Below, one piece after another: positions 14,639-35,649 of a stretch of 64,000 bases of DNA; within the stretch, counting starts at the first letter, position 1, and each line of letters starts with the position of its first letter. This stretch comes from Macrostomum hystrix (taxonomy: Eukaryota; Animalia; Platyhelminthes). The position numbers were made by a program, and so were the translations under genes. Where the stretch lies: assembly GCA_950097015.1 (NCBI GenBank), contig CATNEN010000002.1, positions 7,936,001 through 8,000,000 on the forward strand. Direction: 5' to 3'. The notes below the pieces were generated by a model. It was not told the origin of the DNA. It saw only the letters and a program-made list of their open reading frames with translations, and ran no database searches.

Positions 14639-15583
14639 TGGTTCTCCAGACGCAGACTGGAGACCCAGCGGTGCCTGAGCGACTCTCTGGCGCTGAGAAC
14701 AGGATCGTCAAGATCAGCTCCCGACTGCGTGTTGGCGGCTGATCGAATTAGCGGTCTGTTAGTGGCCCAGTTCGACTCGGACACTCGCCAGTGCTCGCTG
14801 TTCAATTACGAGCTACATTGTCGTGTGCCACCTCATCGATGGACAAGCCAGCAATGGAATCAACGCACTGCACAGCTGTGCTGCATTCGCCAATGCCAGA
14901 GCCGTCAACTTCATGACGCTGAGCAGGAAGCTGATGAGCAGTGTGGGCTCGAAGCTGCGTGCAGCGTGGGTGATGAGTGACGATGAGGAAGCCAGCAAGA
15001 GCAACTTGGTGTGCGGCGAGACGCAGCAGTGGCAGTCGGAGTCAGTGGAGTTCACGAGCGACGGAGCCAAGTTCAATGGAGTGTCATCCAAGATGTGGCT
15101 GAAGGGAGTGGAGTTCTTCAACTTGCAGCAGGGCCTCACGTGGCTGACTAGGCTCAAGCGTGAAGCGAATGAGGCGCCAATTCTCGAGACCTACAACTGC
15201 GATTCGAGAGAACCGGGAAGCGGTTTCTGGAACGGCTGGCCTGCGAGCAGGGGAGTGAGCTATCTGAGGTTGGCTCCAATAGCCAATTCGTATAGAACCG
15301 ATGCATCAACCATCAGCTTTGACCCGAATTTGTGGAGGTTGGCATCACATCAGCTACTCCAGACAGTCGTACGTTTTTCTCTAACGGCCGATTCGTCTCT
15401 TCGTCTAAAGTTTATCACACGAGTACTTATTTTAAGAATGTGAATCAGTCGTTTTACTGCTTCTCTTTGGGATATCGAAACAATCGATCAAAAGTGTTAA
15501 ACGGGACAGTTAGCGCTGTCTCCGTGATGAATGAAACAATGACCGAGATTGAGGTCAAAGCCTTCTTTCAGCTGGTTTCCTGA
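14639..15583 (+). pseudogene. PAN/Apple-like + LamG-like family, copy A (frameshifted)
   Basis: ORFs 14729-14980, 14823-15443 and 15332-15583 join through two frameshifts into a homologue of copies C/D, ending LNGTVSAVSVMNETMTEIEVKAFFQLVS. Confidence 0.85.
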
Positions 15584-16869
15584 CTGTCCGGGCGCATCTG
15601 AATGTGCAGAAATAAACCGCAATGGCACGGCCCTACTCGACCCAAAGACTTTTCTTAGTTGTTTTAGCACACACATCTTATGTTTCAAACATACGAGCTA
15701 CAAACGCTTCACTTCTGTCTTTACTTCTGGCTTTACAATGCGATATGAGCCTAGATACAATAGTTTGTGGAACCTAGATACAATGCTCATATCGCATATC
15801 ACTTGACGACTTTGTTTTCAATTTATTAACCATACAAAAGCCTTGTTCACACCAAACCTTTCCAAAACGAACAACCCTCAACAAACCCAGTAACGCCAAA
15901 CCCACACAAAAATCTTCACTGCACGAAAATCCAAACTGTAACGGAGGTAAAAAGCTTAATTAACTGTGATTTTCGACACGCTATTCAGTTTTGATTATCT
16001 TTCTTTCCTACAAATTTTCTTGTCGTTTTTGAAACATAGAGAAGCGGGCACCTCTAAAGTGCACTGGGCCCTCAAAGTCCTCAATGTACTTTGCATCGCT
16101 CACCTTCTGTTCTGATTTCGAATATTTTCGAATTGTTTCCTCAATTTGGGCCCAAACTGAGAAGGCATACATATTCTAGACTTTATAGCCTCTGCTCACT
16201 CATGCCTCTGTGCCGACTGTAACAAAAAGCTACTCAGATAGTTCCATTGTTTGCCAGCATCGAATCGTGTCGAGACGCTTAACGCTAGACTGCTAGAAGG
16301 CAAGCAATTTTGAAGAGAATAAAACCTGTACTTGCTAATTACTGGTCTATATCGGCGTGCAGTAACTAAAAGGTGTGCAAGTGCCAAACACTGATGGTAA
16401 AATCTGAATTACCTGTCAGATTCAGATTAGGATTTTCGTAGTTAGAGGGGTCGAGTGGACACCTACACCGAAGTTTAAAACTAAATGGCTTGAAAGTTTA
16501 GAATTCGCAAGGAAAAGTTTCTTACGAATGTGTCGCTCAGATCAGTGAACTAAGGTGACGTACATTGTGTAAACGAATGTCCTCTATGAATGTAGTACTG
16601 ATTAATTAATAACAAATCTAATAAATTTACACCGAAAACAAGAGATTTGATGGCAGTTGACAACATTTCTGGTGAATGATTCCTCAAATTTGGTTCTTGT
16701 TTAAAAAATTCTTTACTTTGCCGAAATATTCGCGCATCTCAGCCTCATGAAGTCAGGGTCGGTTCATTGTGGGGAATTACAGCACTGAATCCTTAATCTA
16801 AGCTCATTAATAGACTCGTGCTTATGTTTATATATTCGATATACTCATCGAATTGTCAAGCCACATCTT

Positions 16870-18115
16870 TGAGAAGTTCCCATCGAAACCTGGCTCCATC
16901 GCTGCTGGCTCACTCATTCTCTCATGGAGTGAGTCCTTCCATGAGATCGGCGCTGCCTGAATCCAGATTCAACTGCTGTACCTCGCCGCACATGGATCTG
17001 CTCTGTCTGGCTTCCTCATCATCACTCGTCACTCGGGCATCGACGAATGCAGCGCAGCTGCTGGCACTGCTGGCTTGTCCCGTGATAAGATGGCACACTT
17101 CAGTGAACTTGAACAGCGAGCACTGGCGAGTGTCCGAGTCGAACTGGACCGTTAACAGACCGCTCATTGTGCTCGCAATGCCGATGCACACGAGCTTGCT
17201 CGACACTAGCCGGGGTGTCTGCAGAGCCATGTTGTCGGGCAGGCAAATTGGCGTCTGCAATCTGAACCACTCGGTCTCGCTGGCACAGCGGGCCAACCGG
17301 GCGAGGCTCAGCAGCAGCGCGAGGCCTGAAATTTGTTTGTTGAGTTGGTCCTAAACTCGGCTAGAGCCTTGCCAAGGCCGGTTTGACAAGATCGCTTTTT
17401 GGCCCCCTGCCTGCGGTCTTCACCCCTACCGCCGACGTCACCTCTCGGATTAACCAGTGGGTCGCATCGAAGCACAAGGACAGGTGGATCAACAACGCCG
17501 ATTGTCGGCAGTCTCGCGCTGCTGTTCCATGCCGTCCACTGCCCTCCGCAAAGCCCTGCTTGGACTCAACCGCAGCGACACCAGGGCAGTCACCATGGCC
17601 CTCTCTGGCCATGGTTGTTTCGCTTGGCATCGCTACCTCCAAACAAAATACTCAGGGGTGAGTGCCCTTTCTGCCCCTCCCATGTAGCGAATGCGGAGCA
17701 TTTCATTTGCGACTGCCCCACCTTTCATTCAGGACAGGCCCACCAACCTCCGACCAATCCCGGACCTCTCCAACATTTTCAGAGAATCACGCTCAAGTCA
17801 GGCCTGAGAATATCTCCAGCTCGTCCGTTAACTAAGGGCCACCGGGCGATCGACTCTCCACCTCCTGGATTCTCCGGAGGAGTACCGCGCCATGGAAGCC
17901 AGCACCACTGAACCCGCGCAGCTTTAGTTGCCCGTGGTCGCCAGGGGCTAGCGGGATGGTCGGCAACGCCTCCCTGCTTCGTCTGAAAGATGCCCTTGCA
18001 GCAAACTCAAGTCAAGTCAGTTGGTCCTAAACACGGGCTAGACGCTAGTTTTTCATGGGGTGCATTTATACAATTCAGAGACTGAGTCGTGTAACTCACC
18101 TGCTATAAATTGCAT
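16870..18115 (-). pseudogene. PAN/LamG family, copy B (internally deleted and truncated; LINE in its intron)
   Basis: Exon 1 is 18115-18100 (MQFIA, GTGAGT donor). Exon 2 starts at 17325 (LALLLSLARLARCASETEWFRLQTPIC...). A deletion removes the NFMTLSRK..AAWV segment, followed by an early stop. Confidence 0.8.
17357..18018 (+). mobile_element. 5'-truncated non-LTR retrotransposon with a 14-bp TSD
   Basis: TSD AGTTGGTCCTAAAC at 17343-17356 and 18019-18032; [13 protein letters not shown] and CPFC..AEHFICDCP C-terminal zinc motif; (CAAGT)n tail. Confidence 0.82.
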
Positions 18116-18424
18116 TAGTGAAAAAGCAGGTTTTGTTGTGAAGATTAAAAAATATTTTTTTCTTGTTGAAATGCTCAAAGTATTTTTTACACTCAAAATC
18201 GTCACTAACTTTCTGCGTTGCTATTGCCTCCACTATTAAAGAGTCGATATATAATGAGTGCTTGTATTTTATTCATAATGCAGCCTCACCTACCACCAAT
18301 AGGGTGTGCTCCGAGCAGACAAGCACACAAGAATTCCTCTATTTTAACTAAATTGGTCTGATTGCTGCTGAAGCCTCGATACAAGGAAATCCAACAAGAT
18401 TATAACGCCTGCTTTTTCCGAAGA

Positions 18425-18820
18425 AGCCATCCTCACCAACCCATCCTCACCAACCCATCCTCACTAACCCATCCTCACCGACCCATCCTCACCAACCCAT
18501 CCTCACCAACCCATCCTCACCAACCCATCCTTACCAACCCATCCTCACCAACCCATCCTCATCAACCCATCCTCATCAACCCATCCTCATCAACCCATCC
18601 TCACCAACCCATCCTCATCAACCCATCCTCATCAACCCATCCTCATCAACCCATCCTCATCAACCCATCCTCATCAACCCATCCTCACCAACCCATCCTC
18701 ATCAACCCATCCTCATCAACCCATCCTCATCAACCCATCCTCATCAACCCATCCTCATCAACCCATCCTCATCAACCCATCCTCACCAACGCATCCTCAC
18801 CAACCCCTCCTCACCAACCC
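18425..18820. repeat. 14-bp minisatellite (CCATCCTCAYCAAC)n
   Basis: Period 14, about 28 copies. Confidence 0.96.
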
Positions 18821-19207
18821 AACCCAGATGATATCCGTTTAAATCTTATTAGCACGATTGCCTGTCCGGGCTAGTCAATATTCAAGTTATAATCAATGTA
18901 GACCGTACAGACATCTAGGCCTATTTTAGAGGCAAAATAGGAGCCATGTCTGAGCTTAGCCAACCGTGATTTCGCTTTCTTGTTTAGTTTCGTCTTCATT
19001 GTTGTTTTCGCAATAGCTTTCGTGCTCATTCTGCCGAAGTGACTATGCGCTGCTTCTCATCGCCACCTTTTGTTCCCTGTCATATTTGACTGGTGTCAAA
19101 TTGTGTTTTCGCTATTCAATCGGGCGCCATTGTGTTCTGATTCAGCAAGATCAGAAGCCTAGTCAAGGTAACACGGAAGCCTAGGTGACTCGATCGAGAC
19201 AGTAGAG

Positions 19208-19491
19208 CAGGGGTCGGCAACATTATACACCTTGTGGGCCAAAAAGAGAATCATAAAGACGACAGCGGGCCACACGTTGATGTGGAAGGATGAAGACATG
19301 CGAGAGATAGAAGAAAGATGAGACAGGGGAGAGATGAGACAGGAGAGATGAGAGGAGAGATGAGACAGGGGAGAGATGACACAGGAGTGAGATAAGACAG
19401 GATATAGAGTTGGTGTTGAAAGGAGCTAAGAGCCGGATTTGGAGCGTCGAGGGCCGCATCTGGCCCGCGGGCCGGAGGTTGCCGACCCCTG
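19208..19491. mobile_element. hAT (Charlie-like) MITE
   Basis: TIRs CAGGGGTCGGCAAC / GTTGCCGACCCCTG; 8-bp TSD CAGTAGAG (central TA) at 19200-19207 and 19492-19499. Confidence 0.92.
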
Positions 19492-20324
19492 CAGTAGAGA
19501 GACCATCTCAAATGCCTACAATTTTATTTTTCTGCTTTGAGATGCCAGGCATAACTTTTCTGCGGACAAAATTTCATCATGGAACCATGTCGGCTCCACA
19601 AACTATGTCAATTAGTTAGTCGCAGGCACCTTTTTTTCTCAGCATCCAGGTGCTTTGGTTGAAGGGCCCGACGGTCGCCGCCGATTTTTCAGACGACGAA
19701 AAAGAGAATCCTGATTGCTGGGATACTGAGATCAAAGGTCCCTACGTCAGATGGACTCATATTATTTGACTAATATGAATTCGCTATACCTGTAGGTTTA
19801 TCTAGAGCTCTGTCAGCTGTCGTTGTCACCAGGGTCTTCGACAAGAATCGCTGAATATCTCGACGATGCTGACGTCGGACGGCATTGAAAGCAGGTGTGG
19901 TGGACTTTCACGAAAATCGGTCATTCGGTTTGGGAGCTATCGTGAAGTAGGCAGTGGGCATTTGAAACAGCCCTTGGACTTTCTATAGGGGAAAAGCGGG
20001 GTCTTTCTTTCTCGTACTTCCTTCTTCTTTCTTCATTCTTTTTTCTTTTTTCTGTCTTCATAGTGCAATCGAAGTTTGCGCCATTCAGACCTTCAAAATG
20101 CATCACAAACTTAAAACACTGAAACGCGGCTTTTGAAGATGGAAGCTCCTTAAGATCTGTTGTAAATTTACTACAAGACGAAAGTAGAAAAGACGAAAGT
20201 CGAAAGTAAGTACTACAAACTGATGCCTGACAGCATTAAACTGAGAATTTTGTTTAAGAAGAGACTTCAAAGCTTCACCAGACAGCAGGCTGTTCTTCAC
20301 CGACGGTGTCACCTATCGTGTCGC

Positions 20325-20452
20325 CTATCGTGTCACCTATCGTGTCACCTATCGTGTCACCTATCGTGTCACCTATCGTGTCACCTATCGTGTCACCTAT
20401 CGTGTCACCTATCGTGTCACCTATCGTGTCACCTATCGTGTCACCTATCGTG
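20325..20452. repeat. 12-bp minisatellite (CACCTATCGTGT)n
   Basis: About 10 copies. Confidence 0.96.
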
Positions 20453-20526
20453 CGTCTCTGAGACTGCTATGCAAAGTCAAAGCAGAAACTGCTGGATTCC
20501 TGAAGGACGAATGACGAGTGTCGAGC

Positions 20527-20607
20527 GGAACAGTGAGCGTTGTCTCCTATTTGCATGACACAATGGCCGAAACAGAGATCAAAGCCTTCTTTGAGCTGTT
20601 TCGCTGA
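20527..20607 (+). pseudogene. PAN/LamG family, 3'-end fragment (copy F)
   Basis: Reads GTVSVVSYLHDTMAETEIKAFFELFR*, homologous to the family C-terminus. Confidence 0.65.
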
Positions 20608-20958
20608 CAAGTTGCTCAAAAGCGTCAGAAAATGTGACAAATTCAAATTCCTAATGCAGGCAGAAATGAAAAGTTGAGCACTGCATAATGCTCGATATCT
20701 ATGCTCGTATAATGCTGGTGTAACTTCCTGGTTGATGCACCGAGCATGCCTCCATATGATCACTCAGCTGTGAGTGAGCAACACTTTATATTTTTCCTTT
20801 GTGCGGAGAACTTCTGATCTACTTGACAATCGTTCAATATGGCTCACATCATTGCTGCGTTTGAGCACAGCAGCCACATACAGTTCGATTTCAGAGCTGC
20901 AGTCAGATCGAGAACATTGTCGGCATTGTTGATTTAGATTAGGATAGTACTGATCCAT

Positions 20959-22116
20959 TCAGCGAACCGTGATAAAGAACTTGCTGATTTCTGCCTCAGT
21001 TAGGGTGTCGTTCGCAATGGCCACCGCCCGGATGGTGCCGTTGAATGTGAGATCTTCAGGAGTGTATGCTCCCAAGTATAAACAAGAGGGTGAATCCAGA
21101 ACTGGCTTTTCTAGAGGAAAATCAAATTCATCTTGCAGACCGTAATACTCTGAGTTGCAGTTGAACTGAACCAGACTCTTATTCATTGACGGTGAGATGA
21201 CTGCGAGATCAACGAAATCTTCTGAGTAAATGTCGCACAATTCCGCGGCAACAAAGAAAACCGTGTCTAAAATGCTGTTTCTTGAAAAACTAGTCTGTTC
21301 ATCAGAAGACAATTTCGGTTTGAAGAGGCAATACCACATTAGATCCGTGCCACATGTAATTTTCGTGAAAATCATTCCTGAACCAAATTGTTTTTTTCTG
21401 ATCAGCAGTGAGAGTCCCTGCTCAGTTTCACCGAAATCCGCATTGTCCATCGACATATTTGAGGATACTCCATTGAACTTGGCTCCCTCGCTCGTGAACT
21501 CGACTGACTCCGACTGCCACTGCTGCGTCTCGCCGCACACCAAGTTGCTCTTGCTGGCTTCCTCATCGTCACTCATCACCCACGCTGCACGCAGCTTCGA
21601 GCCCACACTGCTCATCAGCTTCCTGCTCAGCGTCATGAATCTGACGGCTCTGGCATTGGCGAATGCAGCACAGCTGTGCAGTGCGTTGATTCCATTGCTG
21701 GCTTGTCCATCGATGAGGTGGCACACGACAATGTACTTGAACAGCGAGCACTGGCGAGTGTCCGAGTCGAACTGGGCCACCAACAGACCGCTCATTGTGC
21801 TCGCAATGCCGATGCACATGATCTTGCTCGACACTCGCCTTGTCTGCAGAGCCAGAGCGTCGGGCAGACACCGTGACGTCTCCACCCTGAGCCACTCGGC
21901 CTCGTGGCCGCAGCGGGCCAGCTGGGCGATACTCAGGAGCGAAAAAACAATGAGACCTGAAAAAGTGTTATCCTCTTATTAATTAAACTCGATCGTTTAA
22001 TTTATTAGTTATTGGATATCGTGAAAAGTTATCAGCTGCATAAAAGCTGGTGGTAATGTTTTGCCATCCAATCTTGCAAAAGATTTCCCAGCCAACTTAC
22101 CTTCGAGGACACGCAT
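20959..22116 (-). CDS. Secreted PAN/Apple-like + LamG-like (ConA-fold) protein, copy C, intact
   Basis: Exon 1 is 22116-22101 (MRVLE, GTAAGT donor); exon 2 is 21956-20959. It has a signal peptide, LRAAWVM..AKFNGVSS (LamG entry strands) and FNGTIRAVAIANDTLTEAEISKFF (LamG terminal strand and helix). Confidence 0.82.
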
Positions 22117-23299
22117 AGTGGCAGGAGTTGTCGTTTTAGAATTGAAGCCTTCCTAATATCCGTCACTTATAGCAGCAGTCTTTATATTATTAGAAGGTAG
22201 TCTTTTTTGTTTAAATAAAGTGAGCGCACCTGAGTGTCAATTTTTATGCGAGTCGACATAACAAAGAGGCTCACCAATCAGAGCTGCTCGACTTTTAACA
22301 AATTCTTGGAATTGACTCGTTGAAATAAATCCGATTGAGACTATTGGATGGTGAGTCACCGTGGAAATTGTGTGCAGCCCAGCAAAGCACATGCATGTGA
22401 ACTAAGTGCTACTTGACCGTCCTCAGCGCACCTTTTTAGAGAGAGAGGGTTGTGGTCGAAGCTCCGGGCAAGGGCTCTTATTGAGTCTACGCACATGCCT
22501 ATCAGCTTGCTTCGTCTTACCTTTCACTTTTCACGAGTTCTGAGCCGCTCCGGAGTTCTGGAGTTTTTCCATGACGAGTCTTAACAGAATCAAGGTGAGC
22601 GCACCAATAATTAAGCGATGCATTCGTCGCTGACTAGGTGCGGTGACACTGGATATTGTAGAGCTCATTGTTCTGCCGTTCCTATGACCGACAGTATCTT
22701 CAAAGCAGCTAGCAATGTCATTAGTGCAATAAGGAAACATTAAGGAGTCGTCATCGGAAATCGACACCGGAGACACTGACCGACCACATTCCTACAAGAG
22801 ACTCCAGAGTTGATAGCGTTTGGAAATTCAGATTTGGAAATCAAGTGCTAATAATCAAGGTGTTTAGCTCCAAGTTCGTATTCGTTGCTGGAATAACGAA
22901 TTGTTGTTGGAGCACACGCACACAGATTGTTTTTTCAAGCGATGCTGCTTGCCTTCATCCAAGCGGAGCTGCTTTGAGTCGTTAGAGAGCTTTTGTTCTT
23001 TGTTTTCGAGGCTATTCAAGGAGGCCCTTTTTGTTCTGGCTCAGGAGGAACAAGCGAAATCTCACTCTTAGAGAGGGCCTCAACCATGGTCTCTGTACGG
23101 AAAAAGCAAAATAATATCTGAAAATGGCAATCGTCTCATTGCTTCTCGTTCGCTTGAATAGCGTCCTAATTACTGGATGTAATGACACTAAATGACAAAG
23201 GAGAGCTGCAGGCTCAACATTTAGGTTAGTAATAACAAAATTATGTTCGCGTGAGGGTTTCTGGGCACTGGCACAACTTTTGGTGACAGCAGACACGTA

Positions 23300-23560
23300 C
23301 CCAGCGAGGATTCTGCTCATTCCACTGACTCATGAGCACACACGCCACAGATACCGTGCGCAGGCACACTCTTACGCAGGCGTGTACATCTGCCCTAATT
23401 TTCTCATCGCCAGGTAGAGTACACCCTCAACGTGCCTTAGGGGTTGGCAGTCAAGGGCAAAAAATGATGAACTGCGCGTCAAGCCCCAAGCCTTCTCTCC
23501 GCGTCTGCGCTCCAAATGAATGTGGCCTCGCCGCGGAATCGAGCTCAGTGACCTCAGGCC
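23300..23560 (-). mobile_element. tRNA-derived SINE, degenerate copy
   Basis: Shares GGTTGGC..TCAAGGGC, CCCCAAGCCTTCTCTCCGCG and CCAAATGAATGTGGCCTCGCCGCGGAATCGAGCTC with the other copies. Confidence 0.7.
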
Positions 23561-24184
23561 TCGCCGCATTGGCAACAGTAGGAGCCTCGATGAGAGGATC
23601 CTCGATAGCGCAGGACGCCAAGCTCATTCCGATTTCTGCAGCGAAGGCCGCCAGCCGCCGCCAATGCCTAGATCAATGGCATGAGACCTACGGCGCGACT
23701 GCCACCGAAGCACCAGCCACGAGCTCTGCCAGGCGCTGCCATTCCCTCCCTATAAGAATACTTATAAGTAGGCTAATAAGACCGCTCGTTTAGCACTTTT
23801 GCAAATCTAACAAATTTGAGAACGGGTGCTCGTGGTATGTCAAGCACAAATTAAATTTTGGAACTGATAATTATTTGCATGCCCCACATACAGAAGTCAC
23901 ACTTGCAGTTAAAATACAAATGCGAAAATGCATAATCACTACTTGTAGCAGTGGCTCAAGGGAAATATAAGCTGCAAACAGTAGAAACGTTTTTTGGCCT
24001 GCAGCACACTAACAAAAAAACTAATCGAAAATTTTCATAGAAACAAAAAACCGGCAAAAAGACGCGAAACCTCCACCGACAGGAAAAGGGTAAGGCTCCC
24101 CCAAGTCGGGTCAAGCACTCCCTAAAATATCAGGGTTAATCGCCTGCGTGCTGGCTTTTTTGATAGTGACTCTGATGGGGTATT

Positions 24185-24468
24185 GGGACTCTTATAGGGT
24201 ACAGGGACTCTGATAGGGACTCTTACAGGGACTCTGATAGGGTATAGAGACTCTGATAGGGTAAAGAGACTCTGATAGGGTATAGAGACTCTGATAGGGT
24301 ATAGGGACTCTGATAGGGACTCTGATAGGGACTCTGATAGGAACTCTCATAGGGACTCTGACAGGGACTCTGACAGGGACTCTGATAGGGTATAGGGACT
24401 CTGATAGGGCTCTGATAGGGACTCTGACAGGCACTCTGACAGGGACTCTGAAGGGACTCTGACAGGGA
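24185..24468. repeat. 12-bp minisatellite (AGGGACTCTGAY)n
   Basis: Period 12 with variants. Confidence 0.93.
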
Positions 24469-24582
24469 CTTGGCTTATCAGCATATGGAAGCCACGTTAC
24501 AGCACTTCGTGTTCTCCCCTGGCCCGTGGCTGTGTGCACCACAAGCTCTGTATTTCGTAGTGCTGAGTGTGACAATAAGTCA

Positions 24583-24908
24583 ATAATAATAATAATAGTT
24601 ATAATAATTGCAGGAGGGCTGCAGGCAACGGCTCATCATTTGGTGACGCTAGACCCGCAGCCAGCGAGGAAGCAAATTCTGCCCACTCATGAGCACACAC
24701 GCACACGGATACCATTCGCTCTCACAGGTGTGACCATCTGCCCTGACTGTCTGATCTTCAGGCAGTGTAAACTTTCACTGTGCCTTGAAGGTTGGCCCTC
24801 AAGGGCGTAAATTGCACGACAAAACGACCAATGAATGTGGCCTTGCTGCGGAATCGGGCTCAGGGACCTTGGTGCGAGTGGCAAACGCGTTAACCGCTCT
24901 GCCACTCT
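24583..24908 (-). mobile_element. tRNA-derived SINE with (ATT)n tail
   Basis: The minus strand has A box TGGCAGAGCGG, the shared body, and a 3' ATTATTATT tail. Confidence 0.8.
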
Positions 24909-25604
24909 CCCCCTGACAATTCTGTCAAACAATTGTACGAGTAGCAGATTTGAAAACATTTTTTACTTTGCACAGCAGGGGCGAGCCTGAAAGCGCTCAG
25001 TTTTGTCAGCTCAGGTAGTTGACTCTCTTGCTGAAGTGACTGACGATGCAAGGCATTCGCTATTCTACATCATGTCGCTTTTACGTTCTGTGTGATTTTT
25101 CATAGATTTTTTATGCAACGTGCAGCGCAGGCATTTAGCAAAAGTTTTTGTATCGCGTGAAATTGTGTGCCACAGAAATGCTCTGGGTGAGCGAATTTTC
25201 ATAGCTATGCAGAGAGCATTTTGCTGAATTTGCATCACAAAGGATCCAAAAAATCCCAATGATTTTCGCGGAATTATGGCGACAGGCTATTACTCATTGT
25301 GTGAATTTTAGTCGATGATTTTTCTGAGCACAATCATGGGAAATGCTTCGATGAATCTTATGTTCCGATAGGCTGTGTGGAGGCCAACGAGCCATGCGCT
25401 AGAGTTAGCGAAGCCTTTCAACTGTATATTTTCCTTTTTGCAGTTCCAGCAATCAATCAGTAAAAAACTAATCTTTTTTGCAACAAATATCAAGGCAACT
25501 GCTGAACGCGTGCTACACTCAGGAATGGACGAACACATTTTTATTTATTACTCAAACTCTATTAGCCGTGACTATAGCGAGAATAATGAACCCATGACTA
25601 GATT

Positions 25605-26650
25605 GTGGATTCGAGCCCATGACTAGATTGTGGATTCGAGCCCATGACTAGATTGTGGATTCGAGCCCATGACTAGATTGTGGATTCGAGCCCATGACTA
25701 GATTGTGGATTCGAGCCCATGACTAGATTGTGGATTCGAGCCCATGACTAGAATGAATATTTGAGCCCAAGACTAGATTGAAGATTCGAGCCCATGACTA
25801 GATTATGGATTCGACCCTATGACTAGATTGTAAATTCGAACCCATGACTAGATTGTGGATTCGAACCCATGACTAGATTGTGGATTCGAGCCCATGACTA
25901 GATTATGGATTCGAGCCCATGACTAGATTGTGGATTCGAACCCATGACTAGATTATGGATTCGAGCCCATGACTAGATTGTGGATTCGAGCCCATGACTA
26001 GATTGTGGATTCGAGCCCATGACTAGATTGTGGATTCGAACCCATGACTAGATTATGGATTCGAGCCCATGACTAGATTGTGGATTCGAGCCCATGACTA
26101 GATTATGGATTCGAACCCATGACTAGATTGTGGATTCGAGCCCATGACTAGATTATGGATTCGAGCCCATGACTAGATTATGGATTCGAACCCATGACTA
26201 GATTGTGGATTCGAGCCCATGACTAGATTATGGATTCGAGCCCATGACTAGATTGTGGATTCGAACCCATGACTAGATTATGGATTCGAGCCCATGACTA
26301 GATTGTGGATTCGAACCCATGACTAGATTGTGGATTCGAGCCCATGACTAGATTATGGATTCGAACCCATGACTAGATTAAAGATTCGAGCCCATGACTA
26401 GATTGTGGATTTGAGCCCATGACTAGATTGTGGATTCGAGCCCATGACTAGATTATGGATTCGAACCCATGACTAGATTAAAGATTCGAGCCCATGACTA
26501 GATTGTGGATTTGAGCCCATGACTAGATTGTGGAAGCGAGCCCATGACTAGATTGTGGATTCGAGCCCATACTAGATTGTGGAAGCGAGCCCATGACTAG
26601 ATTGTGGATTCGAACCCATGACTAGATTGTGGATTTGAGCCCATGACTAG
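25605..26650. repeat. 25-bp minisatellite (CCCATGACTAGATTGTGGATTCGAG)n, about 42 copies
   Basis: Head-to-tail period of 25 with no spacers. Confidence 0.98.
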
Positions 26651-26855
26651 ATTGTAGATTTATTGTGGATTTGTGCAAAAAATCGAAGAAGATGCAAAAT
26701 AGAGGCAAAACGTTGTCGAGTCTGCAGCTCACTCTAACACACTCGCGCCCAACTATGCTGAAAGAAGGCATTTTTTTGTCTGGAGATGCAGTCAGGTCGG
26801 AAAAAGTTTCAGCGTAGGATTTCACATTTTGCGAGCTGTTCCAATTGCGATCCAG

Positions 26856-27950
26856 TCAGCGAACCAGGCCGAAAAATTCGTTGATCTCAGACTCAGTGAG
26901 GGTGTCGTTCGAGATGGCCACAGCCCGAATGGTGCCGTTCAACCAGGGGTCTCCAGGATAGGGTGTGCTTCCCAGAGTAAAGCATGCCGAAGCGCTCAGG
27001 CTGGGCTGCGATATATAAAAGTCCTCAGTAAACTTTGGACTGTAAGTGTTTGAGTAGCAGAAGAACTCAACCTGATTCCCATCCATTGACGGCGAATGGA
27101 CAGCGAACTCAACGAAACCTCCAGTGTCAAGGCGGCACGAGTCAAAGTAATCCATAAAGCCAATGTTCACATGGTCGTTTCTAATAAAGCTCACATGATT
27201 ATCAAACGAGTTGGCTAACTCGTACCAAAGTATCGTACGAACGCATTCAAATTTTCTGATGATTGTCCCTTCTCCACTCTGCCTGATCCTAAACAGCAAC
27301 GAGAGTACCTGCTCAGTTTCACCGAAATCCGCATTGTCCATCGACATCTTTGAGGATACTCCATTGAACTTGGCTCCCTCGCTCGTGAACTCGACTGACT
27401 CCGACTGCCACTGCTGCGTCTCGCCGCACACCAAGTTGCTCTTGCTGGCTTCCTCATCTTCACTCATCACCCACGCTGCACGCAGCTTCGAGCCCACACT
27501 GCTCATCAGCTTCCTGCTCAGCGTCATGAAGTTGACGGATCTGGTATTGGCGAATGCAGCGCAGCTGTGCAGTGCGTTGATCCCATCGCTGGCTTGTCCA
27601 TTGATGAGGTGGCACACGACAATGTACTTGAACAGCGAGCACTGGCGAGTGTCCGAGTCGAACTGGGCCACCAACAGACCGCTCATTGTGCTCGCAATGC
27701 CGATGCACATGATCTTGCTCGACACTCGCCTTGTCTGCAGAGCCAGAGCATCGGGCAGACACCGCGACGTCTCCACCCTGAGCCACTCGGCCTCGCTGCC
27801 GCAGCGGGCCAGCTGGGCGCGACTCAGGAGCGAAAGCAAAGCAACACCTGAATGCGATTTTAGTTTAATTAAATTCAGTTCATAGTACCATTCTTTATTT
27901 ATGAGACTATATCTCCACAGTACTTCTTACTCACATGCTATTAGATGCAT
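26856..27950 (-). CDS. Secreted PAN/Apple-like + LamG-like protein, copy D, intact (335 aa)
   Basis: Exon 1 is 27950-27935 (MHLIA, GTGAGT donor); exon 2 is 27847-26856. The reading frame is continuous and the architecture matches copy C. Confidence 0.85.
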
Positions 27951-28599
27951 CAGTAGTGGTGGCAGCTTCAGCTGCTGCTGAAGGTATTTTTTAGCAGTTC
28001 GTTCGAGATTTCAAGTCACTCCGACGGAACTGTAGATCAGTATTTATAGCTTAGCGATGGATTCGTCAGTTCTGTTACTCGTGCAGCCTGTTTTGAAGCT
28101 GCCTTTCTCCAATCGAAGTTAATTGGCTCCCATTGAACGCTTTTCTCTCTGCAGCACAGTTGCAATTCATTTTTACAATGCTCAATGTTGTTTGTGTCAT
28201 TTACTCGTATATTTATATTTATACTGATATTTACGTTTAAAAGCTATTATTCGAGAAGACAAAACCGCAACAGACAAGCATGTGAACATGTTTGAACACA
28301 GGCAGTTCAAACCGACTTGACTTGACTTCTCCGCTGGGCGGTCTGAAGACATGGGATGTTCTCGGATCTGCAAATTTCTTCCATTGATGGAATCGGTCCG
28401 AGGTGTTTTAGCCTCATCATTGAACGCTTTTCTCTCTGCAGCACAGTTGCAATTAATCATTAAAATACTTAAATGCTTTTGAGTCATGATATTTATGCTT
28501 AATAGCAATTAGTCCCGAAGAGCGATATCCGAAACAGCAACAGACGAGCATGTGACTTGACACGGGCAGTTCAACCGACACTTCAAACCATGTGTTCAG

Positions 28600-29030
28600 C
28601 TGACTAAATTGACTTTGCTGCAGGGGGCATCTTCCGGACGCAGTGGGAAGGCGTCGCCGCCAATTCCGCTTGCCCTGGGCGAACATGGGCAACTAAAGCT
28701 GCGGTGTCGCGCAGGGGGATCCGGTGATGCCGGCGTCTACGGAGGTGGAGACTCGCTCACTTGGTGGCCCTCAGGTAACGGACGAGCTGGCAGATATTCT
28801 CAGACCTGAAAATGTCGGAGAGGTCCGGGTTTGGCACGGATTTTGTGCAGATTTTTTTGCGGATTTGCGATGCCTAGCGAAACCGCCTGGCCAGAGAGGG
28901 CCATGGTGACTGCCCTGATGTCCCTGCGGATTATGTAGCACCGAAGGCTCTGCGGATTTGCACAAGCATCGCGAGAGCTTTGCGGGTTTTCAATTTGACG
29001 TGAGATGTCCAGCTCAACCTGTGGTCGAGG
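28600..29030 (-). mobile_element. Degenerate LINE, 3' part (same family as 17357-18018)
   Basis: VILDHRLSWTSHVKLKTRKALAML; CAGGGCAGTCACCATGGCCCTCTCTGGCCA and the 3' end are shared with the 17.4-kb copy. Confidence 0.75.
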
Positions 29031-29035
29031 ATAAC

Positions 29036-32000
29036 TGTCAAGCCGTGCTCAGGAGTATAAGGCAAGACTGCCCGTAGGCTTGGTTTTGGTTAGTAGCGAA
29101 TTTAGTTTATTAGTCACGATGTTTCACGATACACTTGCATATATATATAAGTAGACGAGTCAACAAGGCTTAAAAGTCAACAGGTGTAGAGTACATCAAT
29201 AATCAATATTCAGGCTGCGTACATTAGGTCAGAGTGCGGTTGGCGCGCAGGCCTGCAGATCTACCACAGTTCACTTGCTTAACACAGTTCACGGTTCATT
29301 CACGGCTCAAACCCCGGCACGTCATCTCCCCCCTTCGAACCGCTCGGGCGGCACGCCCTGATTCGCACGGAGGTTGTAGCTCGGTCTCTGGGGAGTCGCG
29401 GCCGGTGACGGTACTCTGCCACTGGCCGCTTGCGGCGGATCTGCGGTCTCCCCTGGCGCGCTTGCCTGGGTCAAGGACGCAGGCATGTTTTCATGTCGCG
29501 CTTCAGGCAAGTCGGCGGGTCTTGGAGCAACTTCGTGGCTGACTGCGGCTGTCGCAACGTCTCCATTGCCGCCGGCTTCGTGCCGACGCAGTTGGTCTAG
29601 GTGGGCGAGCGTGACCCGGTCACCCTGTCGCATGATCAGCGCCGTGTTGGACCCTTTCTGCGCCAGGAACTCCGCCTTCTCCGGTGTGGCACTCGGCGTT
29701 GGAGCGTACCAGACCTCAGAGCGGATCGCTGTCTTCATGGTGATGGGGTTTCGCAGCTGCCTTCCCATTAGTTGCGCCGGGCTGAACTCCCTTCCGGCGT
29801 GCGGTACACATCGGTAGTTCAGTAGGATCCGTGCCAGGAATGCGTCGTACGGCTCCTGCTGATCCCAGCCCGCCGAGGCCACCTTGATTGTCTGCACCAT
29901 TCGCTCGGCCAGGCCGTTGGACTGGGGATGATATGGTGGGGTTTTCACAGCGCGGCAGCCGATTCTGTGCAGCCAGCTCACCAACCCCTCATCATGGAAC
30001 TCTGCAGCATTGTCACTCACCAGGGTTCTCGGCACTCCGTTGCGGGCGAAGACCTCCTGGAGGACCCGCCTGACGGTGGCGGCGCTCTTGTCGGGCACTC
30101 GGATAGCCTCCGGCCAGGCAGACATGGCGTCGACCAGGATCAGCAGGAGCCCGACCTTCGGAACGTGAGCGTGGTCCATGTGCACGCGCCCCCAAGGCTC
30201 AGACTCGGCGGGCCATTGGTGGACACTGCTGTGACTACTTTGACGTTGCTTGGCGCAGGTCTGGCAGGCACGGACGAATCCTTCGACGTCACCGCAGTAG
30301 CCTGGCCACCAGACGGAGTTGCGGACCAGCGCTCGAGTGCTCGTGGCGCCCGGATGCGCCCCGCTGTGCACCAATTCCAGGACGCGACTGCGTAGTGAAG
30401 CAGGAATGACCGGGCGATCGCCGTAGCACACCACCGAGCCGTCTAGAGTGAGCGCATGTCGAATTGCTTTGAATTGCCGTTCCGCAGGCGAGCAACCCGA
30501 CCAACGGTTTCCAGCTATCCTTCGAGTGATGTCCGCTAGCAGTCTATCGCGCTTTGTCTCCTCTGCCAGCTCAGTCCAGCCGATGACGCTTTCACCGGCC
30601 CAATGCACCAGGTGTTGTTGGGGTGCCGCCTCATATGGATCGTCCGGGACGTCAGCGATGTCAAGACGAGACAACGCATCGGCGTGCGGGATGTCGACTC
30701 CGCGGGCGTACTCAATAGCGAAGTCAAATCCCATGAGGCGGATCGCCCAGCGCAGGATGCGGGCATTGGCGACTTTAGGGAGCTGCTGCCGTGCCCCGAA
30801 CAGAAACTCGAGAGGGCGGTGGTCGGTTCGCAGAGTGAAGCGCTTGCCCAGTAGGAACTGACGGGACCTCTCCATTGACCACACAATCGCCAGCGCCTCC
30901 CGTTCGATGTTGGAGTAGCGTGTCTCTGCCTCCGTCAACCGCCTGCTGAAGTAGATGACGGGATGACCTTCTTGCGTGAGCACGGCGGCCACCGCCTTCT
31001 CACTGGCGTCGGTCGTGAGCGTTGTTTCCTTTGTCCGGTCGTATGGCTGGATGATCGGGCTGGAGCTCAGGAGCTTCTTTAGCTGGTGGAAGGCCGCTTC
31101 CTGTGCAGTTGTCCAAGTGAACTCCACTCCCTTCTTGCGCAGCTGGTTCAGGGGCTCGACGATGTGCGCATAATTGTTGACGAACCTTCCGAAGAAATTG
31201 CAGAGGCCGAGGAAGGACTCCAACTGGCGACGGTCGCGTGGTGCAGTGATTTCTTTGATCTTGCTGACCAGACCAGGGTCCGGAGAGATTCCATCTGCAC
31301 CGATTCTGTAGCCGAGGAACTTGACGCTCTTGGCGCCCAAGTTGGACTTGGCGAGATTTATGTTCATTCCGGCTGCCTGGAGGATCTTAATTACTTCATC
31401 GACTTTGGCTTTGAGATCTTCGCTGGAGCGACCTCCGAGCAGAATATCGTCTTGATAGACGACCTTGCCGTTCACCTCCTCAAGGGTAGTCTCCATGGCC
31501 TTTTGAAAGATGGCGGATGCTGACTTGAGGCCCGGCACGAGTCGGGTGTAGCGAAACAGACCGAGTGGGGTCGCAATCGTAGTGACTTCCCTGCTCTTCT
31601 CCTCGAGTTCAATCTGTAGATACGCGTCAGATAGGTCGAGGGTCGCGAAGTCAGTCATTCCGGCGACATCCGAGAAGATGGTCTCGACGGTTGGCATTGG
31701 ATAGGTGTCTCCGCACACTTGATGATTGACCCCCGCCTTGTAATCGGCACAAATTCTGATGTTGCCGTTGGGTTTGAGGACGCAGACGATTGGTGACGCC
31801 CACTCGCTACCGCCTTCGGTCACTGGTTCAATTATTCCTTCAGCCTGGAGGCGCTTCAGCTCTTGGTTGACGCGGTCGCGCAGGTGCAGCGGCACCGCTC
31901 TGGCTGCGCAGTAGAATGGCTTGGCACCTTCGATCAGCTTGATTCTGGCTTGGAAACCCTTCAGGCAATTGAGGTGCTGTACTGCAGTGCCTTGGCCACC

Positions 32001-33464
32001 GACTGTCTGCCTCTCAGAGTTCCAATCCAGGTTGTCGAGGCCCAACAGCCCGTGTGACTTGTGTGCTGCAGTGACAACCAAGTCGACAGTGCGGAACTTG
32101 TCTTTATCATTCCACGTTGCTGTGAACTCGCCCAGGGTCTTGATTATTGATCCATCAAATTGCCTCAGGATTCGCTTGGACTTCCTTAGCGCTGGACGCC
32201 CGAGCATCTCCCAGTGGCCCCTGGGAATGAGGCTTACGTCGGCGCCTGTGTCCACTTGCATCTGCAGCTCTTTGCCGTTGATCTTGACGCGCCGGAAGAT
32301 GCCTTTTCGCTCCTTGTTCTCCGGTCTGATGACGAAGACGTTGGCGGCATCTGGCTTCGGGGCGGCATCATCGTCCTCCTCCCAGGTCTCCAAGTGCACA
32401 GTGCGGGACCTGAAAACGGCTGCGTAGTGGTTTTTCTTGTTGCAGGTGGTGCACCTTTTGCCGAAGGCGGGGCATGAGCCCTGCTGGTGCGAACCGCCAC
32501 AGTATTGGCACTTCGTCCTGGTTGTGTGCCTCGGCGATCTGGTGTCCGGAGGAAGCTGTGGAGGTGCGGCGCGCCGACCTGCATAGGCGATGCTTGACTC
32601 GGTGGTGACGGTGGGCCCGGTGCCGGCGTTGTAGTAGCGAATCTGCTCCAACTGCTCAAGCTCTTGCAGCACATCGGTCAGCAGCATGTCGATGCCCTGC
32701 ATCCTCTCCAGCAGTCTGCGCTTGTGGTCCACGGAGGCAAGACCGTCCACGAGCCTCATGGTGATGAGTTCGTCCTCACAGGTCTGTTTCGAGCCTAGCT
32801 TCTCAAAACTGCACGAGGCAGCAGCTGCTCGGAGCCGGCGGTAGTACGATGCGACGACTTCGCTCGGATCCTGCCTGAGGGAGAGGAATTTCACCCTCTC
32901 GGCAATGGTGAGGCGCCGCTTGGGCCGAATGGTTGCATCGATGATGTCGCGGATCTGTGCGAATGTTTTGGTCTCCAGGCTGTCTGGGGCAGCCATGAGG
33001 GTCAGGGTTCTCAGTGCCTTGAGGCCTGCCCTCGAGAGGAATAGATCAGTGATCTGGTGTTCCTCTTCCGAATCCTTCAGTTTCTTGGTCCGTGCAGCGG
33101 CCGCGAAACTGAGCAGCCAGGCTTCGGCTGTGTCTGGATCTTCCAGGTTTAGTTCAGATGCTTGCGATGCCATTGTCAAGCCGTGCTCAGGAGTATAAGG
33201 CAAGACTGCCCGTAGGCTTGGTTTGGGTTAGTAGCGAATTTAGTTTATTAGTCACGATGTTTCACGATACACTTACATATATATATATAAGTAGACGAGT
33301 CAACAAGGCTTAAAAGTCAACAGGTGTAGAGTACATCAATAATCAATATTCAGGCTGCGTACATTAGGTCAGAGTGCGGTTGGCGCGCAGGCCTGCAGAT
33401 CTACCACAGTTCACTTGCTTAACACAGTTCACGGTTCATTCACGGCTCAAACCCCGGCACGTCA
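29036..33464 (-). mobile_element. Full-length Ty3/Gypsy LTR retrotransposon
   Basis: TG...CA LTRs at 33174-33464 (5') and 29036-29324 (3'), differing by only about 2 substitutions plus one TA indel; 5-bp TSD ATAAC at 29031-29035 and 33465-33469; PPT GAAGGGGGGAGA; PBS-like TGGCATCG. Confidence 0.97.
29322..33173 (-). CDS. Single gag-pol polyprotein (Gag Zn knuckles, PR, RT, RNase H, IN)
   Basis: CQYCGGSH..CPAFGKRC; DTGA protease; YQDD RT; TDASE RNase H; HHCC plus D..SDNA..E integrase, in PR-RT-RH-IN order. The ATG is at 33173. Confidence 0.96.
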   Translation of the reverse strand: MASQASELNLEDPDTAEAWLLSFAAAARTKKLKDSEEEHQITDLFLSRAGLKALRTLTLMAAPDSLETKTFAQIRDIIDATIRPKRRLTIAERVKFLSLRQDPSEVVASYYRRLRAAAASCSFEKLGSKQTCEDELITMRLVDGLASVDHKRRLLERMQGIDMLLTDVLQELEQLEQIRYYNAGTGPTVTTESSIAYAGRRAAPPQLPPDTRSPRHTTRTKCQYCGGSHQQGSCPAFGKRCTTCNKKNHYAAVFRSRTVHLETWEEDDDAAPKPDAANVFVIRPENKERKGIFRRVKINGKELQMQVDTGADVSLIPRGHWEMLGRPALRKSKRILRQFDGSIIKTLGEFTATWNDKDKFRTVDLVVTAAHKSHGLLGLDNLDWNSERQTVGGQGTAVQHLNCLKGFQARIKLIEGAKPFYCAARAVPLHLRDRVNQELKRLQAEGIIEPVTEGGSEWASPIVCVLKPNGNIRICADYKAGVNHQVCGDTYPMPTVETIFSDVAGMTDFATLDLSDAYLQIELEEKSREVTTIATPLGLFRYTRLVPGLKSASAIFQKAMETTLEEVNGKVVYQDDILLGGRSSEDLKAKVDEVIKILQAAGMNINLAKSNLGAKSVKFLGYRIGADGISPDPGLVSKIKEITAPRDRRQLESFLGLCNFFGRFVNNYAHIVEPLNQLRKKGVEFTWTTAQEAAFHQLKKLLSSSPIIQPYDRTKETTLTTDASEKAVAAVLTQEGHPVIYFSRRLTEAETRYSNIEREALAIVWSMERSRQFLLGKRFTLRTDHRPLEFLFGARQQLPKVANARILRWAIRLMGFDFAIEYARGVDIPHADALSRLDIADVPDDPYEAAPQQHLVHWAGESVIGWTELAEETKRDRLLADITRRIAGNRWSGCSPAERQFKAIRHALTLDGSVVCYGDRPVIPASLRSRVLELVHSGAHPGATSTRALVRNSVWWPGYCGDVEGFVRACQTCAKQRQSSHSSVHQWPAESEPWGRVHMDHAHVPKVGLLLILVDAMSAWPEAIRVPDKSAATVRRVLQEVFARNGVPRTLVSDNAAEFHDEGLVSWLHRIGCRAVKTPPYHPQSNGLAERMVQTIKVASAGWDQQEPYDAFLARILLNYRCVPHAGREFSPAQLMGRQLRNPITMKTAIRSEVWYAPTPSATPEKAEFLAQKGSNTALIMRQGDRVTLAHLDQLRRHEAGGNGDVATAAVSHEVAPRPADLPEARHENMPASLTQASAPGETADPPQAASGRVPSPAATPQRPSYNLRANQGVPPERFEGGR

Positions 33465-33469
33465 ATAAC

Positions 33470-33890
33470 ATCTAAGCATCTAGTTTGCTTCTCCATGGCG
33501 ATGATTTTGTCATAGAGAAGAAGAGGCTAAATCCACCAATTAGTATGTTGGTGAACAAGGTGGCAGTGGTCTGAGAATCAGAGAGTTTGAGCCCGCATCT
33601 GTGCGCTGGAGGTGGATGTAAGCTTGCAAAATGTCTCTGAGGACCACCAGGCACCGTGGCGGTAACATCGTCAGCATAGCCGATTTTCTGGACCGGGTCC
33701 GGGCCAGGGCTGCAGGGCAGCTCGTCTATGGAGAGGTTCCAGAGGATCGGACTAAGAACCCACCCTCTGGGCCTCCCTTCTGGACTTCCACAGAGCGGGA
33801 GTGGCCAAGCAGGTGCGAGGTAGCAGGTGAGTGAGACACCATATACATGATCCAGCAGATAAGGTGCTCGTGCGTAGCCCGGCGCTTCAG
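33470..33890 (-). mobile_element. Degenerate LINE RT fragment, continuous with 28600-29030 across the Gypsy
   Basis: GVLSPILWNL and GYADD motifs; RCLDVI|LDHRLSW reads through once the Gypsy and one TSD are removed. Confidence 0.78.
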
Positions 33891-33909
33891 GACTCGCCTA
33901 AAGGCTTCA

Positions 33910-34110
33910 AAGAGCCACAGCTGATCCTCACATTTTTATATGGTAGAGTGAAGCCGCTGTTTCTACAAGAGCCACAGCTGATCCTCACATTTTTATATGG
34001 TAGAGTGAAGCCGCTGTTTCTACAAGAGCCACAGCTGATCCTCACATTTTTATATGGTAGACTGAAGCCGCTGTTTCTACAAGAGCCACAGCTGATCCTC
34101 ACATTTTTAT
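33910..34110. repeat. 57-bp tandem repeat, about 3.5 copies
   Basis: AAGAGCCACAGCTGATCCTCACATTTTTATATGG... recurs with period 57. Confidence 0.93.
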
Positions 34111-34342
34111 ATTAATTCAGCAGTTTGTTTTCGAATGGGCCTTCAAAAAGGCTGAATGTTGCAAAAAAGTGCCAACATTTTGTTGTACAAATTCTCAGGA
34201 TAAAAGCTGAAACAGCAACAGAAAATCATATATCATACATTACAACAACCACATTCGCACATAATAAAGTCTAAATGATGCTCATACTCATACATGCTCA
34301 TGCAGCGAGCGACTGAAAACTCTCGAAGTCGTTGAACTCAAA

Positions 34343-35345
34343 TCAGCGCACCAGACCGAAGAAGCTGCTGATCTCCGCTCCAGTCATTGTGTCGTTCATG
34401 ATTGCAACCGAGCGGATCGATCCATTCAACTTGGGCCAAGTGCCCAGAAGCCGTAGCCCGAGGGAGAGGCAGTAAAAATCCATCATTGAAGATTTCACAA
34501 AGGTTGCACCCTGCGTCACTTTGGCTGGTGCCACGAATCCTGAGTTGGAGAAGAAGTTTCTGCTCCGAGGGGATGATGAAGTGAGTCCAACTTCAATGAA
34601 AATGTTCGGGTCGTAACTGTTTGTCGAGGCGAGGCGTCTGTCAAGAACTCCACTGTGTTTAGGTCATATCTTGAGGCGTAGAGGCCGTTTGATGATGGAG
34701 CTCCATCCCAAAAGCAGCTCCCAATTTCCTTAGTGTCACACTTGTAGCTCTCCATGATCACGGCCCCGTAAGCCGCACGCTTGAGCCTGAACAGCCAACT
34801 AAGCCCAAGTCCCAAGTTAGCGAACTCCACGTTCTCAAGCAACATCTTGGATGACACTCCGTTGAACTTGGCTCCCTCGCTGCTGAACTTGACTGACTCC
34901 GACTGCCACTGCTGCGTCTCGCCGCACACCAAGTTGCTCTTGCTGGCTTCCTCATCGTCACTCATCACCCACGCTGCACGCAGCTTCGAGCCCACACTGC
35001 TCATCAGCTTCCTGCTCAGCGTCATGAAGTTGACGGCTCTGGCATTGGCGAATGCAGCACAGCTGTGCAGTGCGTTGATCCCATTGCTGGCTTGTCCATT
35101 GATGAGGTGGCACACGACAATGTACTTGAACAGCGAGCACTGGCCAGTGTCCGAGTCGAACTGGGCCACCAACAGACCGCTCATTGTGCTCGCAATGCCG
35201 ATGCACATGATCTTGCTCAACACTCGCCTTGTCTGCAGAGCCAGAGCGTCGGGCAGACACCGTGACGTCTCCACCCTGAGCCACTCGGCCTCGCTGCCGC
35301 AGCGGGCCAGCTGGGCGAGGAGAGCCAAGCAGAGTACGAATTTTA
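34343..35345 (-). pseudogene. PAN/LamG family, copy E (one frameshift near 34620)
   Basis: Exon 2 starts at 35345. The frame shifts to SYDPNIFIEVGLTSSSPRSRNFFSN...LNGSIRSVAIMNDTMTGAEISSFFGLVR*. Its variable region is the same subtype as copy A. Confidence 0.83.
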
Positions 35346-35649
35346 CTGAAAAGCGAAAAAAAATGAGAAGATTTTCCGATTTCTCTTCTAACTGCAGAGT
35401 TATTAACTACAGTCTTTACCGGTTTAGAATAATTGATTGAAATGGTGTAAGGATTAATGCTCAAAGTCTAAAAGTTACTGTCTAAAATCTAAAAGTTAAG
35501 TTATCAACTCGGACATAGAACAAGTTACTAAATTATTCCAAAAGGTGCTTTCTTGTGCTATTATTTGGAGGGAAAAATGTAAACGTTGGACTTACCAAAC
35601 TCAGCTTTCATTTCAAAGCGCAGTTGGTCGAAAATAATGACTGGCTTGC

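Follow-up and report, generated by a model that had tools for sequence, protein, structure and literature searches.

Part of a single exon is homogenised, probably by gene conversion, among tandem copies of a lectin-like gene family in the flatworm Macrostomum hystrix

Introduction

Why should several neighbouring genes be almost identical over a few hundred nucleotides inside one exon and deeply diverged on either side? The question is raised by a 64,000-nt stretch of the genome of the flatworm Macrostomum hystrix (assembly GCA_950097015.1, contig CATNEN010000002.1, positions 7,936,001 to 8,000,000 of the forward strand). This whole stretch is called the window, and coordinates are counted from its first letter. 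The window holds a tandem cluster, in mixed orientation, of five recognisable copies (A to E) and one relic (F) of a lectin-like gene. Judged from the relatives found, the cluster appears to represent a gene family restricted to macrostomid flatworms. We refer to the shared stretch as the island and to the diverged 3′ part of the coding sequence as the body. An earlier note, made from the letters alone, had proposed that segmental gene conversion keeps a constant N-terminal module fixed while a binding domain diversifies. Repeated regional interlocus (non-allelic) gene conversion of the island between old copies is, in our assessment, very probably the explanation; other parts of that proposal fared less well.

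Results

Extent and age of the island

The island was mapped by sliding identity, base-by-base alignment of the five regions and tract calling, and synonymous (dS) and nonsynonymous (dN) divergence were taken from a codon alignment. It is 340–500 nt long and 96–97.5% identical among copies A, C, D and E, where it lies as follows.

14745–15088, plus strand: island of copy A (base-by-base alignment and tract calling)
21430–21930, minus strand: island of copy C (sliding identity, alignment and tract calling)
27321–27837, minus strand: island of copy D (reaching about 27364 against E and A, and about 27321 against C)
34862–35325, minus strand: island of copy E (tract calling)

The tract shared by C and E measures 458 nt (97.4% identity), that of D and E 464 nt (96.8%) and that of A and C 337 nt (97.0%, interrupted by a 7-nt insertion in A); the C–D tract is about 500 nt long (D 27820 to about 27321). 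Beyond the island limits, identity falls to 30–60% within a few tens of bases in both the 5′ and the 3′ direction, so both flanks are as deeply diverged as had been described. The divergent 5′ side consists of the signal peptide, the intron and exon 1, and the divergent 3′ side of the jelly-roll core; introns, exon 1 and outer flanks could not be aligned between copies at all. Copy A enters the island exactly at the GLLVAQFD codons (A 14745), where the earlier note had placed its entry. Its own 5′ part of the island is old (dS about 1.2), and divergence therefore steps up on both sides of the tract. Towards the 3′ end, the likeness of C and D continues for about 65 nt past A and E, whose bodies form a second subtype; the staggered breakpoints read from the sequence before are thus real.

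Synonymous sites separate the two parts of the gene sharply. In the same gene pairs, dS was 0.016–0.067 in the island core and ranged from 0.96 to saturation in the body, so that dS is anything but uniform along the gene. The claim that the islands of C, D and E are nearly identical, silent sites included, holds at this level of dS, with 96–97.5% identity rather than complete identity. Even the conserved C-terminal strand differs at many third positions, as claimed, with a third-position identity of 0.37–0.67 and a dS of 0.66–3.2. Within the island of the window copies, dN was about equal to dS, and the frame-broken copies A and E bear the same island as the intact ones. Neither observation shows any sign of constraint on the island. 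Each island copy keeps 1–4% of private differences and its own unique flanks on a single contig, which argues that the island is not an assembly collapse.

Pairwise dN/dS of the bodies was 0.25–0.55 overall, namely 0.54 for C against D and 0.25–0.26 for A and E against P0011, a protein of the congener Macrostomum lignano; dS is saturated in these comparisons and their power is low. With such ratios, the bodies behave as old genes under purifying selection and not as hypervariable ones. On these sequence comparisons, the anomaly would be a young island, not a fast body.

Over every island, antisense or second-frame open reading frames (ORFs) of 108–250 codons are present (27211–27885, 21230–21982 and 34781–35440 on the plus strand; 27460–27786 on the minus strand). 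A Pfam search of the antisense and alternative-frame ORFs of the island returned no family, and the open extra frames are most likely a by-product of codons rich in G and C at third positions (GC3) rather than a second gene.

Relatives in other genomes

An exhaustive profile search and cluster look-up recovered the M. lignano members P0011 (PAA88331.1), P0015, P0021, P0022, P0027 and P0037, together with environmental contigs. About 20 relatives were present among 1.84 billion representative proteins, all of them from M. lignano or from environmental contigs, and a word-indexed protein search returned just five environmental relatives. The proteins of the window itself were absent from the protein collections searched. 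A metagenome scan for further loci yielded no new contig, and literature searches for the M. lignano gene identifier, for Macrostomum with gene conversion and for Macrostomum with laminin G or PAN found nothing relevant.

The M. lignano orthologue served as a between-species clock. Island DNA that is 96–97.5% identical within the window is only about 74% identical to the M. lignano locus (L007), with dS of 0.27–1.08, dN of 0.15–0.42 and an amino-acid identity of 50–77%. The island has thus been free to change at both silent and replacement sites, and constraint cannot explain its identity within the genome. In the body, copy A is 52% identical to P0011. In the orthologous copy (L007 9678–10648, NIVC01000195.1), the 5′ half, which corresponds to the island, is interrupted by an in-frame stop and by changes of frame, and the annotated P0011 begins at an internal methionine; this copy is either decaying or affected by an assembly error.

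Trees of the two halves disagree. On the island tree, window copies A to E form one clade (support 97/94) that is sister to M. lignano P0015/P0011. The body tree pairs A with P0011 (96/89) ahead of E, which joins this pair (89/82), and places C and D together on a separate long stem (100/99). In approximately unbiased (AU) tests, the island data rejected the body grouping (p = 0.0018). The body subtypes are probably older than the split from M. lignano, as far as these sequences can tell.

The same step was found elsewhere in the family. Four environmental relatives from two samples are 97–100% identical up to the same region and 40–50% identical after it, and their 3′ boundary coincides with that of the window species within about 20 codons. 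Three of their contigs start right at the end of the island, which is what a breakdown of assembly in a shared repeat would produce. A second M. lignano subfamily (P0021, P0037 and P0118; UniRef models) has the same pattern of a constant stretch at the protein level. In P0021, two N-terminal halves are fused in one gene model; they are near-identical from the CSLFRY motif on, but a patch within the PAN-like domain differs between them. The UniRef names of these M. lignano entries (UBC core, COIA1, MAM and SPATA6) likewise stem from fused gene models.

Mosaic sites, permutation tests and base composition

Sites within the island support mutually incompatible partitions: two of them split the copies as {A,C}|{D,E}, the 3′ edge as {C,D}|{A,E}. 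Both the 5′ and the 3′ tract ends differ from pair to pair. These patterns and the staggered ends require several conversion events. A maximum-fragment permutation test reached the observed value in 0 of 10,000 permutations for C–D, C–E and D–E. For pairs with A, a Sawyer-type permutation gave p of 0.02–0.04; the near-absence of polymorphism in the island across the four copies leaves this test underpowered, and we put weight on dS and on the between-species control instead.

GC3 was higher in the island (0.76–0.80) than in the body (0.48–0.63) in each of the four copies (p between 2e-3 and 4e-8), and likewise in M. lignano P0011 (0.90 vs 0.67, p = 6e-4). Biased conversion acting over a long time typically leaves such a rise in GC3.

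Structure of the copies

Copies were located within the window by tblastn, with the intact copies and their relatives as queries. The elements found are listed below by position.

14588–15577, plus strand: copy A by tblastn, annotated as far as 15583, with an A/E-type body
16958–17315, minus strand: copy B by tblastn, annotated as far as 17326, a truncated and decayed N-terminal fragment
20515–20607, plus strand: copy F, about 30 residues left over from the C-terminal strand of a copy resembling A
20959–21956, minus strand: copy C exon 2, ORF intact through the stop codon
21957–22100, minus strand: copy C intron, GT...AG, 144 nt
22101–22116, minus strand: copy C exon 1, 16 nt (ATG plus 13 nt), read directly from the sequence
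26856–27847, minus strand: copy D exon 2, intact ORF
27848–27934, minus strand: copy D intron, GT...AG, 87 nt
27935–27950, minus strand: copy D exon 1, 16 nt, with a TATA-like box upstream
34343–35345, minus strand: copy E exon 2, with an A/E-type body and one frame break within 34612–34740
35346–35595, minus strand: copy E intron, GT...AG, 250 nt
35596–35611, minus strand: copy E exon 1, 16 nt

C, D and E have a common plan: a 16-nt exon 1, a phase-1 intron and then a single large exon. Exon 1 and the first codons of exon 2 together encode a typical hydrophobic signal peptide, split by the intron after nucleotide 16. This plan had been ascribed to B, C and D; it holds for C and D and extends to E, and a search for the 16-nt exon in copy B found none. 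The island of B is just 75–93% like the other copies and contains internal deletions. Copy A has at least two frame breaks on three-frame reading, one of them the 7-nt insertion inside the island, and neither a signal peptide nor an exon 1 was recognisable in its upstream sequence; on this reading of its sequence it is probably a pseudogene. The only intact copies are therefore C and D, with A and E frame-broken and B a fragment. Where six paralogues had been counted, five stand as recognisable copies and the sixth, F, is the short relic.

Protein architecture and fold

Sequence and predicted models suggest that the family consists of small, putatively secreted proteins in which a signal peptide is followed by a PAN-like domain with five cysteines, then by a helical linker and finally by a jelly roll of divergent Laminin_G_3/ConA-like type. 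A model of D was built on a 60-row alignment that included Laminin_G_3 sub-ranges (predicted local distance difference test score, pLDDT, 89.6; predicted template modelling score, pTM, 0.85), and in it the jelly roll spans residues ~112–327. Foldseek gave an E of about 1e-7 for this model. VIA matched it to domain 4 of the arabinanase AbnA (PDB 5ho0; Z 19.5, root-mean-square deviation 2.5 over 178 residues) and, at Z of 14–17, to other lectin-like modules, among them CBM40, pentraxins and a lectin-like subdomain found in clostridial neurotoxins. These are generic matches of fold that imply no toxicity. The Atlas neighbours of the model are Laminin_G_3 clusters (TM 0.55–0.73). The Pfam profile Laminin_G_3 (PF13385) scored below its cut-off of 27.6 bits for D (17.3), C (16.2) and P0001 (20.5), the last aligning with the profile end to end (1–151), and distant matches of the family profile (E 1e-8 to 1e-4) carry Laminin_G_3 at E 1e-20 to 1e-32 in the matched stretch. 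A glycan- or ligand-binding function of the predicted jelly roll may be supposed.

The N-terminal domain (residues ~18–100) has five invariant cysteines and an F..Y motif, and is modelled as beta-beta-alpha-beta-beta-alpha-beta with a pLDDT above 90. Its language-model neighbours are PAN_1 clusters at 0.83, a match at the level of a lead. Scans for PAN (PF00024 and PF14295) gave no Pfam match at E up to 1 or, in a second scan, 0.1, and a profile of ten N-terminal domains found nothing among PDB sequences at E up to 10. The PAN/Apple assignment of the earlier note is thus without Pfam backing, and membership is only a lead. In the predicted model the island ends at about residue 150–180, inside the jelly roll and past its first four or five strands rather than at a domain border, so that it does not correspond to the constant N-terminal module that had been proposed.

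Genomic copy number and expression

Among contigs from a DNA run aligned to copy D, the summed depth, which is not a copy number, was 113–175 over the unique flanks and 1,350–6,700 over 27366–27829 (roughly 8–60 times). Ninety-three contigs are 90–100% alike, and several leave the island into other flanks. Depth and contig exits are consistent with the island being present some tens of times in the genome.

In two runs (X2 and X3), contigs cover D exon 2 and run on for about 190 nt after the stop codon at ~97–98% identity, without intron or promoter. As a sign of expression this exon-limited layout is ambiguous and only suggestive. The tables of X2 and X3 are identical contig for contig and probably represent one data set filed twice.

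Surroundings of the cluster

Between D and E lies a Ty3/gypsy-type long terminal repeat (LTR) retrotransposon (29036–33440) with LTRs of about 265 nt that are 98.5% alike (29036–29300 and 33174–33440). Its uninterrupted ORF (29322–33203, minus strand, 1293 residues) encodes gag, protease, reverse transcriptase, RNaseH and integrase. We rejected the idea that the lectin-like copies are transposon cargo, since outside the gene they have nothing in common. A 25-nt satellite (25591–26660, 42.8 copies at 92% identity) adjoins copy D on its 3′ side, and other short arrays occur at 12571–12836 (20 nt), 18427–18821 (14 nt), 20306–20452 (12 nt), 24163–24470 and 33910–34112 (57 nt, 99%). A short dispersed repeat (74–91% identity), unrelated to the lectin-like family, is found at 28597–28929 and 17570–18023, upstream of D and B and in opposite orientation. 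Just past the cluster, an ORF of 246 residues (36858–37598, minus strand) belongs to no family, its sole match, to DUF4360, being at chance level. No Rfam family was detected anywhere in the window.

Discussion

Regional gene conversion between old copies

Under the gene-conversion reading, a break in one copy would be repaired from the homologous stretch of another, overwriting a segment that starts where the signal peptide ends, takes in the PAN-like domain and reaches into the first jelly-roll strands. Conversion would have to work between copies in either orientation, given that copy A lies on the other strand. Tracts would stop where usable homology ends, at the signal peptide, intron and exon 1 on the 5′ side and at the jelly-roll core on the 3′ side. 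The diverged flanks would in turn block extension of the tracts, producing a self-perpetuating boundary that could stay stable across speciation without selection. Multiple events with different ends would leave staggered breakpoints, and conversion over a long time would raise GC3. We infer both the repair mechanism and this homology-cliff boundary from the pattern of the copies. Segmental gene conversion, as first suggested from the sequence, is upheld by the dS step, the comparison with M. lignano, the incongruent trees, the mosaic sites, GC3 and the presence of the island in dead copies.

Several observations weigh against this account. The between-species clock is a single M. lignano orthologue whose 5′ half is broken. 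The conflict between trees, expected of the two halves, runs in one direction only: the body data did not reject a single clade of the four window copies (p = 0.19) or A and E as sisters (p = 0.09), and with these reverse AU tests non-significant, bodies that predate the species split are favoured and not proven. In the environmental relative L001, GC3 does not rise (0.64 vs 0.63). Short-read polishing of a multi-copy stretch could inflate island identity by a few percent, and none of the runs recorded as RNA contained the gene. The evidence for conversion comes from a comparison of copies, and no polymorphic tract was directly observed.

Alternative explanations

Conversion could also be the mechanism with its boundary being adaptive. 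Selection would then maintain the constant/variable architecture, keeping the front of the protein common for a shared partner, an anchor or an oligomer interface, and keeping conversion out of the ligand-binding core, which would provide a diversified repertoire for recognition in immunity, mating or adhesion. We regard this as unlikely. It would suit the coincidence of the 3′ boundary in the window species and the environmental relatives, the similar constant stretch in the second M. lignano subfamily (P0021/P0037), a contig depth that suggests many island-bearing copies, and a fold that is that of carbohydrate-binding modules. A self-perpetuating homology cliff, however, predicts an equally stable boundary without selection; the boundary cuts through the jelly roll instead of falling between domains, the pairwise dN/dS of the bodies lies between 0.25 and 0.55, and three of the five copies in the window are broken. 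That the binding domain is diversifying, as had been suggested, finds no support in bodies that are old, saturated in dS, under dN/dS well below 1 and, in the case of A, grouped with the M. lignano orthologue. This grouping also bears on the very unlikely case that whole genes were duplicated recently and that the island shows their true young age, the bodies having since diverged very fast by diversifying selection or targeted hypermutation. Although the body data alone do not reject a clade of window copies, the step from island dS of 0.02–0.07 to saturated synonymous sites, the unalignable introns, exon 1 and flanks, a body dN/dS below 1 and the old 5′ island part of copy A, which puts a step on both sides of the tract, all speak for old genes with a young segment.

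Two further accounts do without copying between old genes, and we consider both very unlikely. Purifying selection acting on the island at the level of protein, RNA or an antisense ORF would be in keeping with a stretch that is open in several frames on both strands. The island nevertheless diverges between species at silent and replacement sites alike, its dN about equals its dS within the window, frame-broken copies share it, its antisense ORFs have no Pfam family, the window has no Rfam match, and GC3-rich codons are expected to leave such frames open. The identity might otherwise be an artefact of assembly or polishing, or the island a mobile cassette inserted into unrelated genes. Short-read assemblies do break at a multi-copy island and polishing can homogenise such stretches, but each copy on this one contig has its private differences and its own flanks, and the same step recurs in independent assemblies of other organisms. 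As for a cassette, in every copy the island is in frame and occupies the homologous position, and it is ~74% identical to the sequence of the orthologue; no shared repeat flanks it, and the copies are alike only in the gene itself.

Comparison with known systems

If the analogy with known systems is right, the process is a familiar one, found here in a family without a name or a known function. In the Pcdh2 protocadherin clusters of fugu, tandem paralogues are >99% identical, at silent sites too, over one portion of a single large exon and divergent over the rest; the homogenisation is specific to lineages, the homogenised portion has a significantly higher GC3, and trees need the unconverted part (PMC1852091). 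The lectin-like cluster resembles these genes in its tandem paralogues, its regional homogenisation of one exon at silent sites and its raised GC3. It differs from them in that protocadherins homogenise the 3′ part of the exon while their N-terminal recognition domains vary, whereas here an internal, 5′-proximal stretch is homogenised. The tracts are also shorter (~0.35–0.5 kb), and in contrast to protocadherins, which function in neuronal identity, the present family is small, apparently secreted and uncharacterised.

In genes of the major histocompatibility complex (MHC), such as bird class IIB, interlocus conversion homogenises one part, and old lineages persist in the part that binds the ligand. 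There, each part has an exon of its own, and the binding exon is documented to be under balancing selection; the island and body of the lectin-like genes, by contrast, share one exon. In conotoxin superfamilies, a constant signal/pro region is conserved at silent sites and followed by a hypervariable mature region, on separate exons and with positive selection on the mature part. The bodies described here differ in being old, under purifying selection and in the same exon as the island. Structurally, the predicted jelly roll is like the Laminin_G_3/ConA-like carbohydrate-binding modules (AbnA domain 4, sialidase CBM40 and pentraxins; Z 14–19.5), but unlike them it scores below the Pfam cut-off.

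Significance

The cluster offers a very clean natural case in which conversion tracts occupy only a portion of one exon. With the pattern replicated in at least two further lineages of the family, the length of tracts, their GC bias and the homology-cliff effect could be measured in a genetically amenable flatworm. In practice, the island has to be left out of family trees and orthology calls, and assemblies of short reads will break at this stretch.

The finding also defines an unnamed, lineage-restricted family of putatively secreted PAN-like and LamG_3 proteins. Dozens of such lectin-like proteins may be kept across macrostomid species, with a front homogenised genome-wide as a common handle, old and divergent jelly-roll cores as alternative binding specificities, and a boundary held by selection; this is a bolder proposition, to which we assign a low probability. 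Were it true, an invertebrate would have in these genes a family for recognition with a constant/variable design, active in immunity, mating or adhesion.

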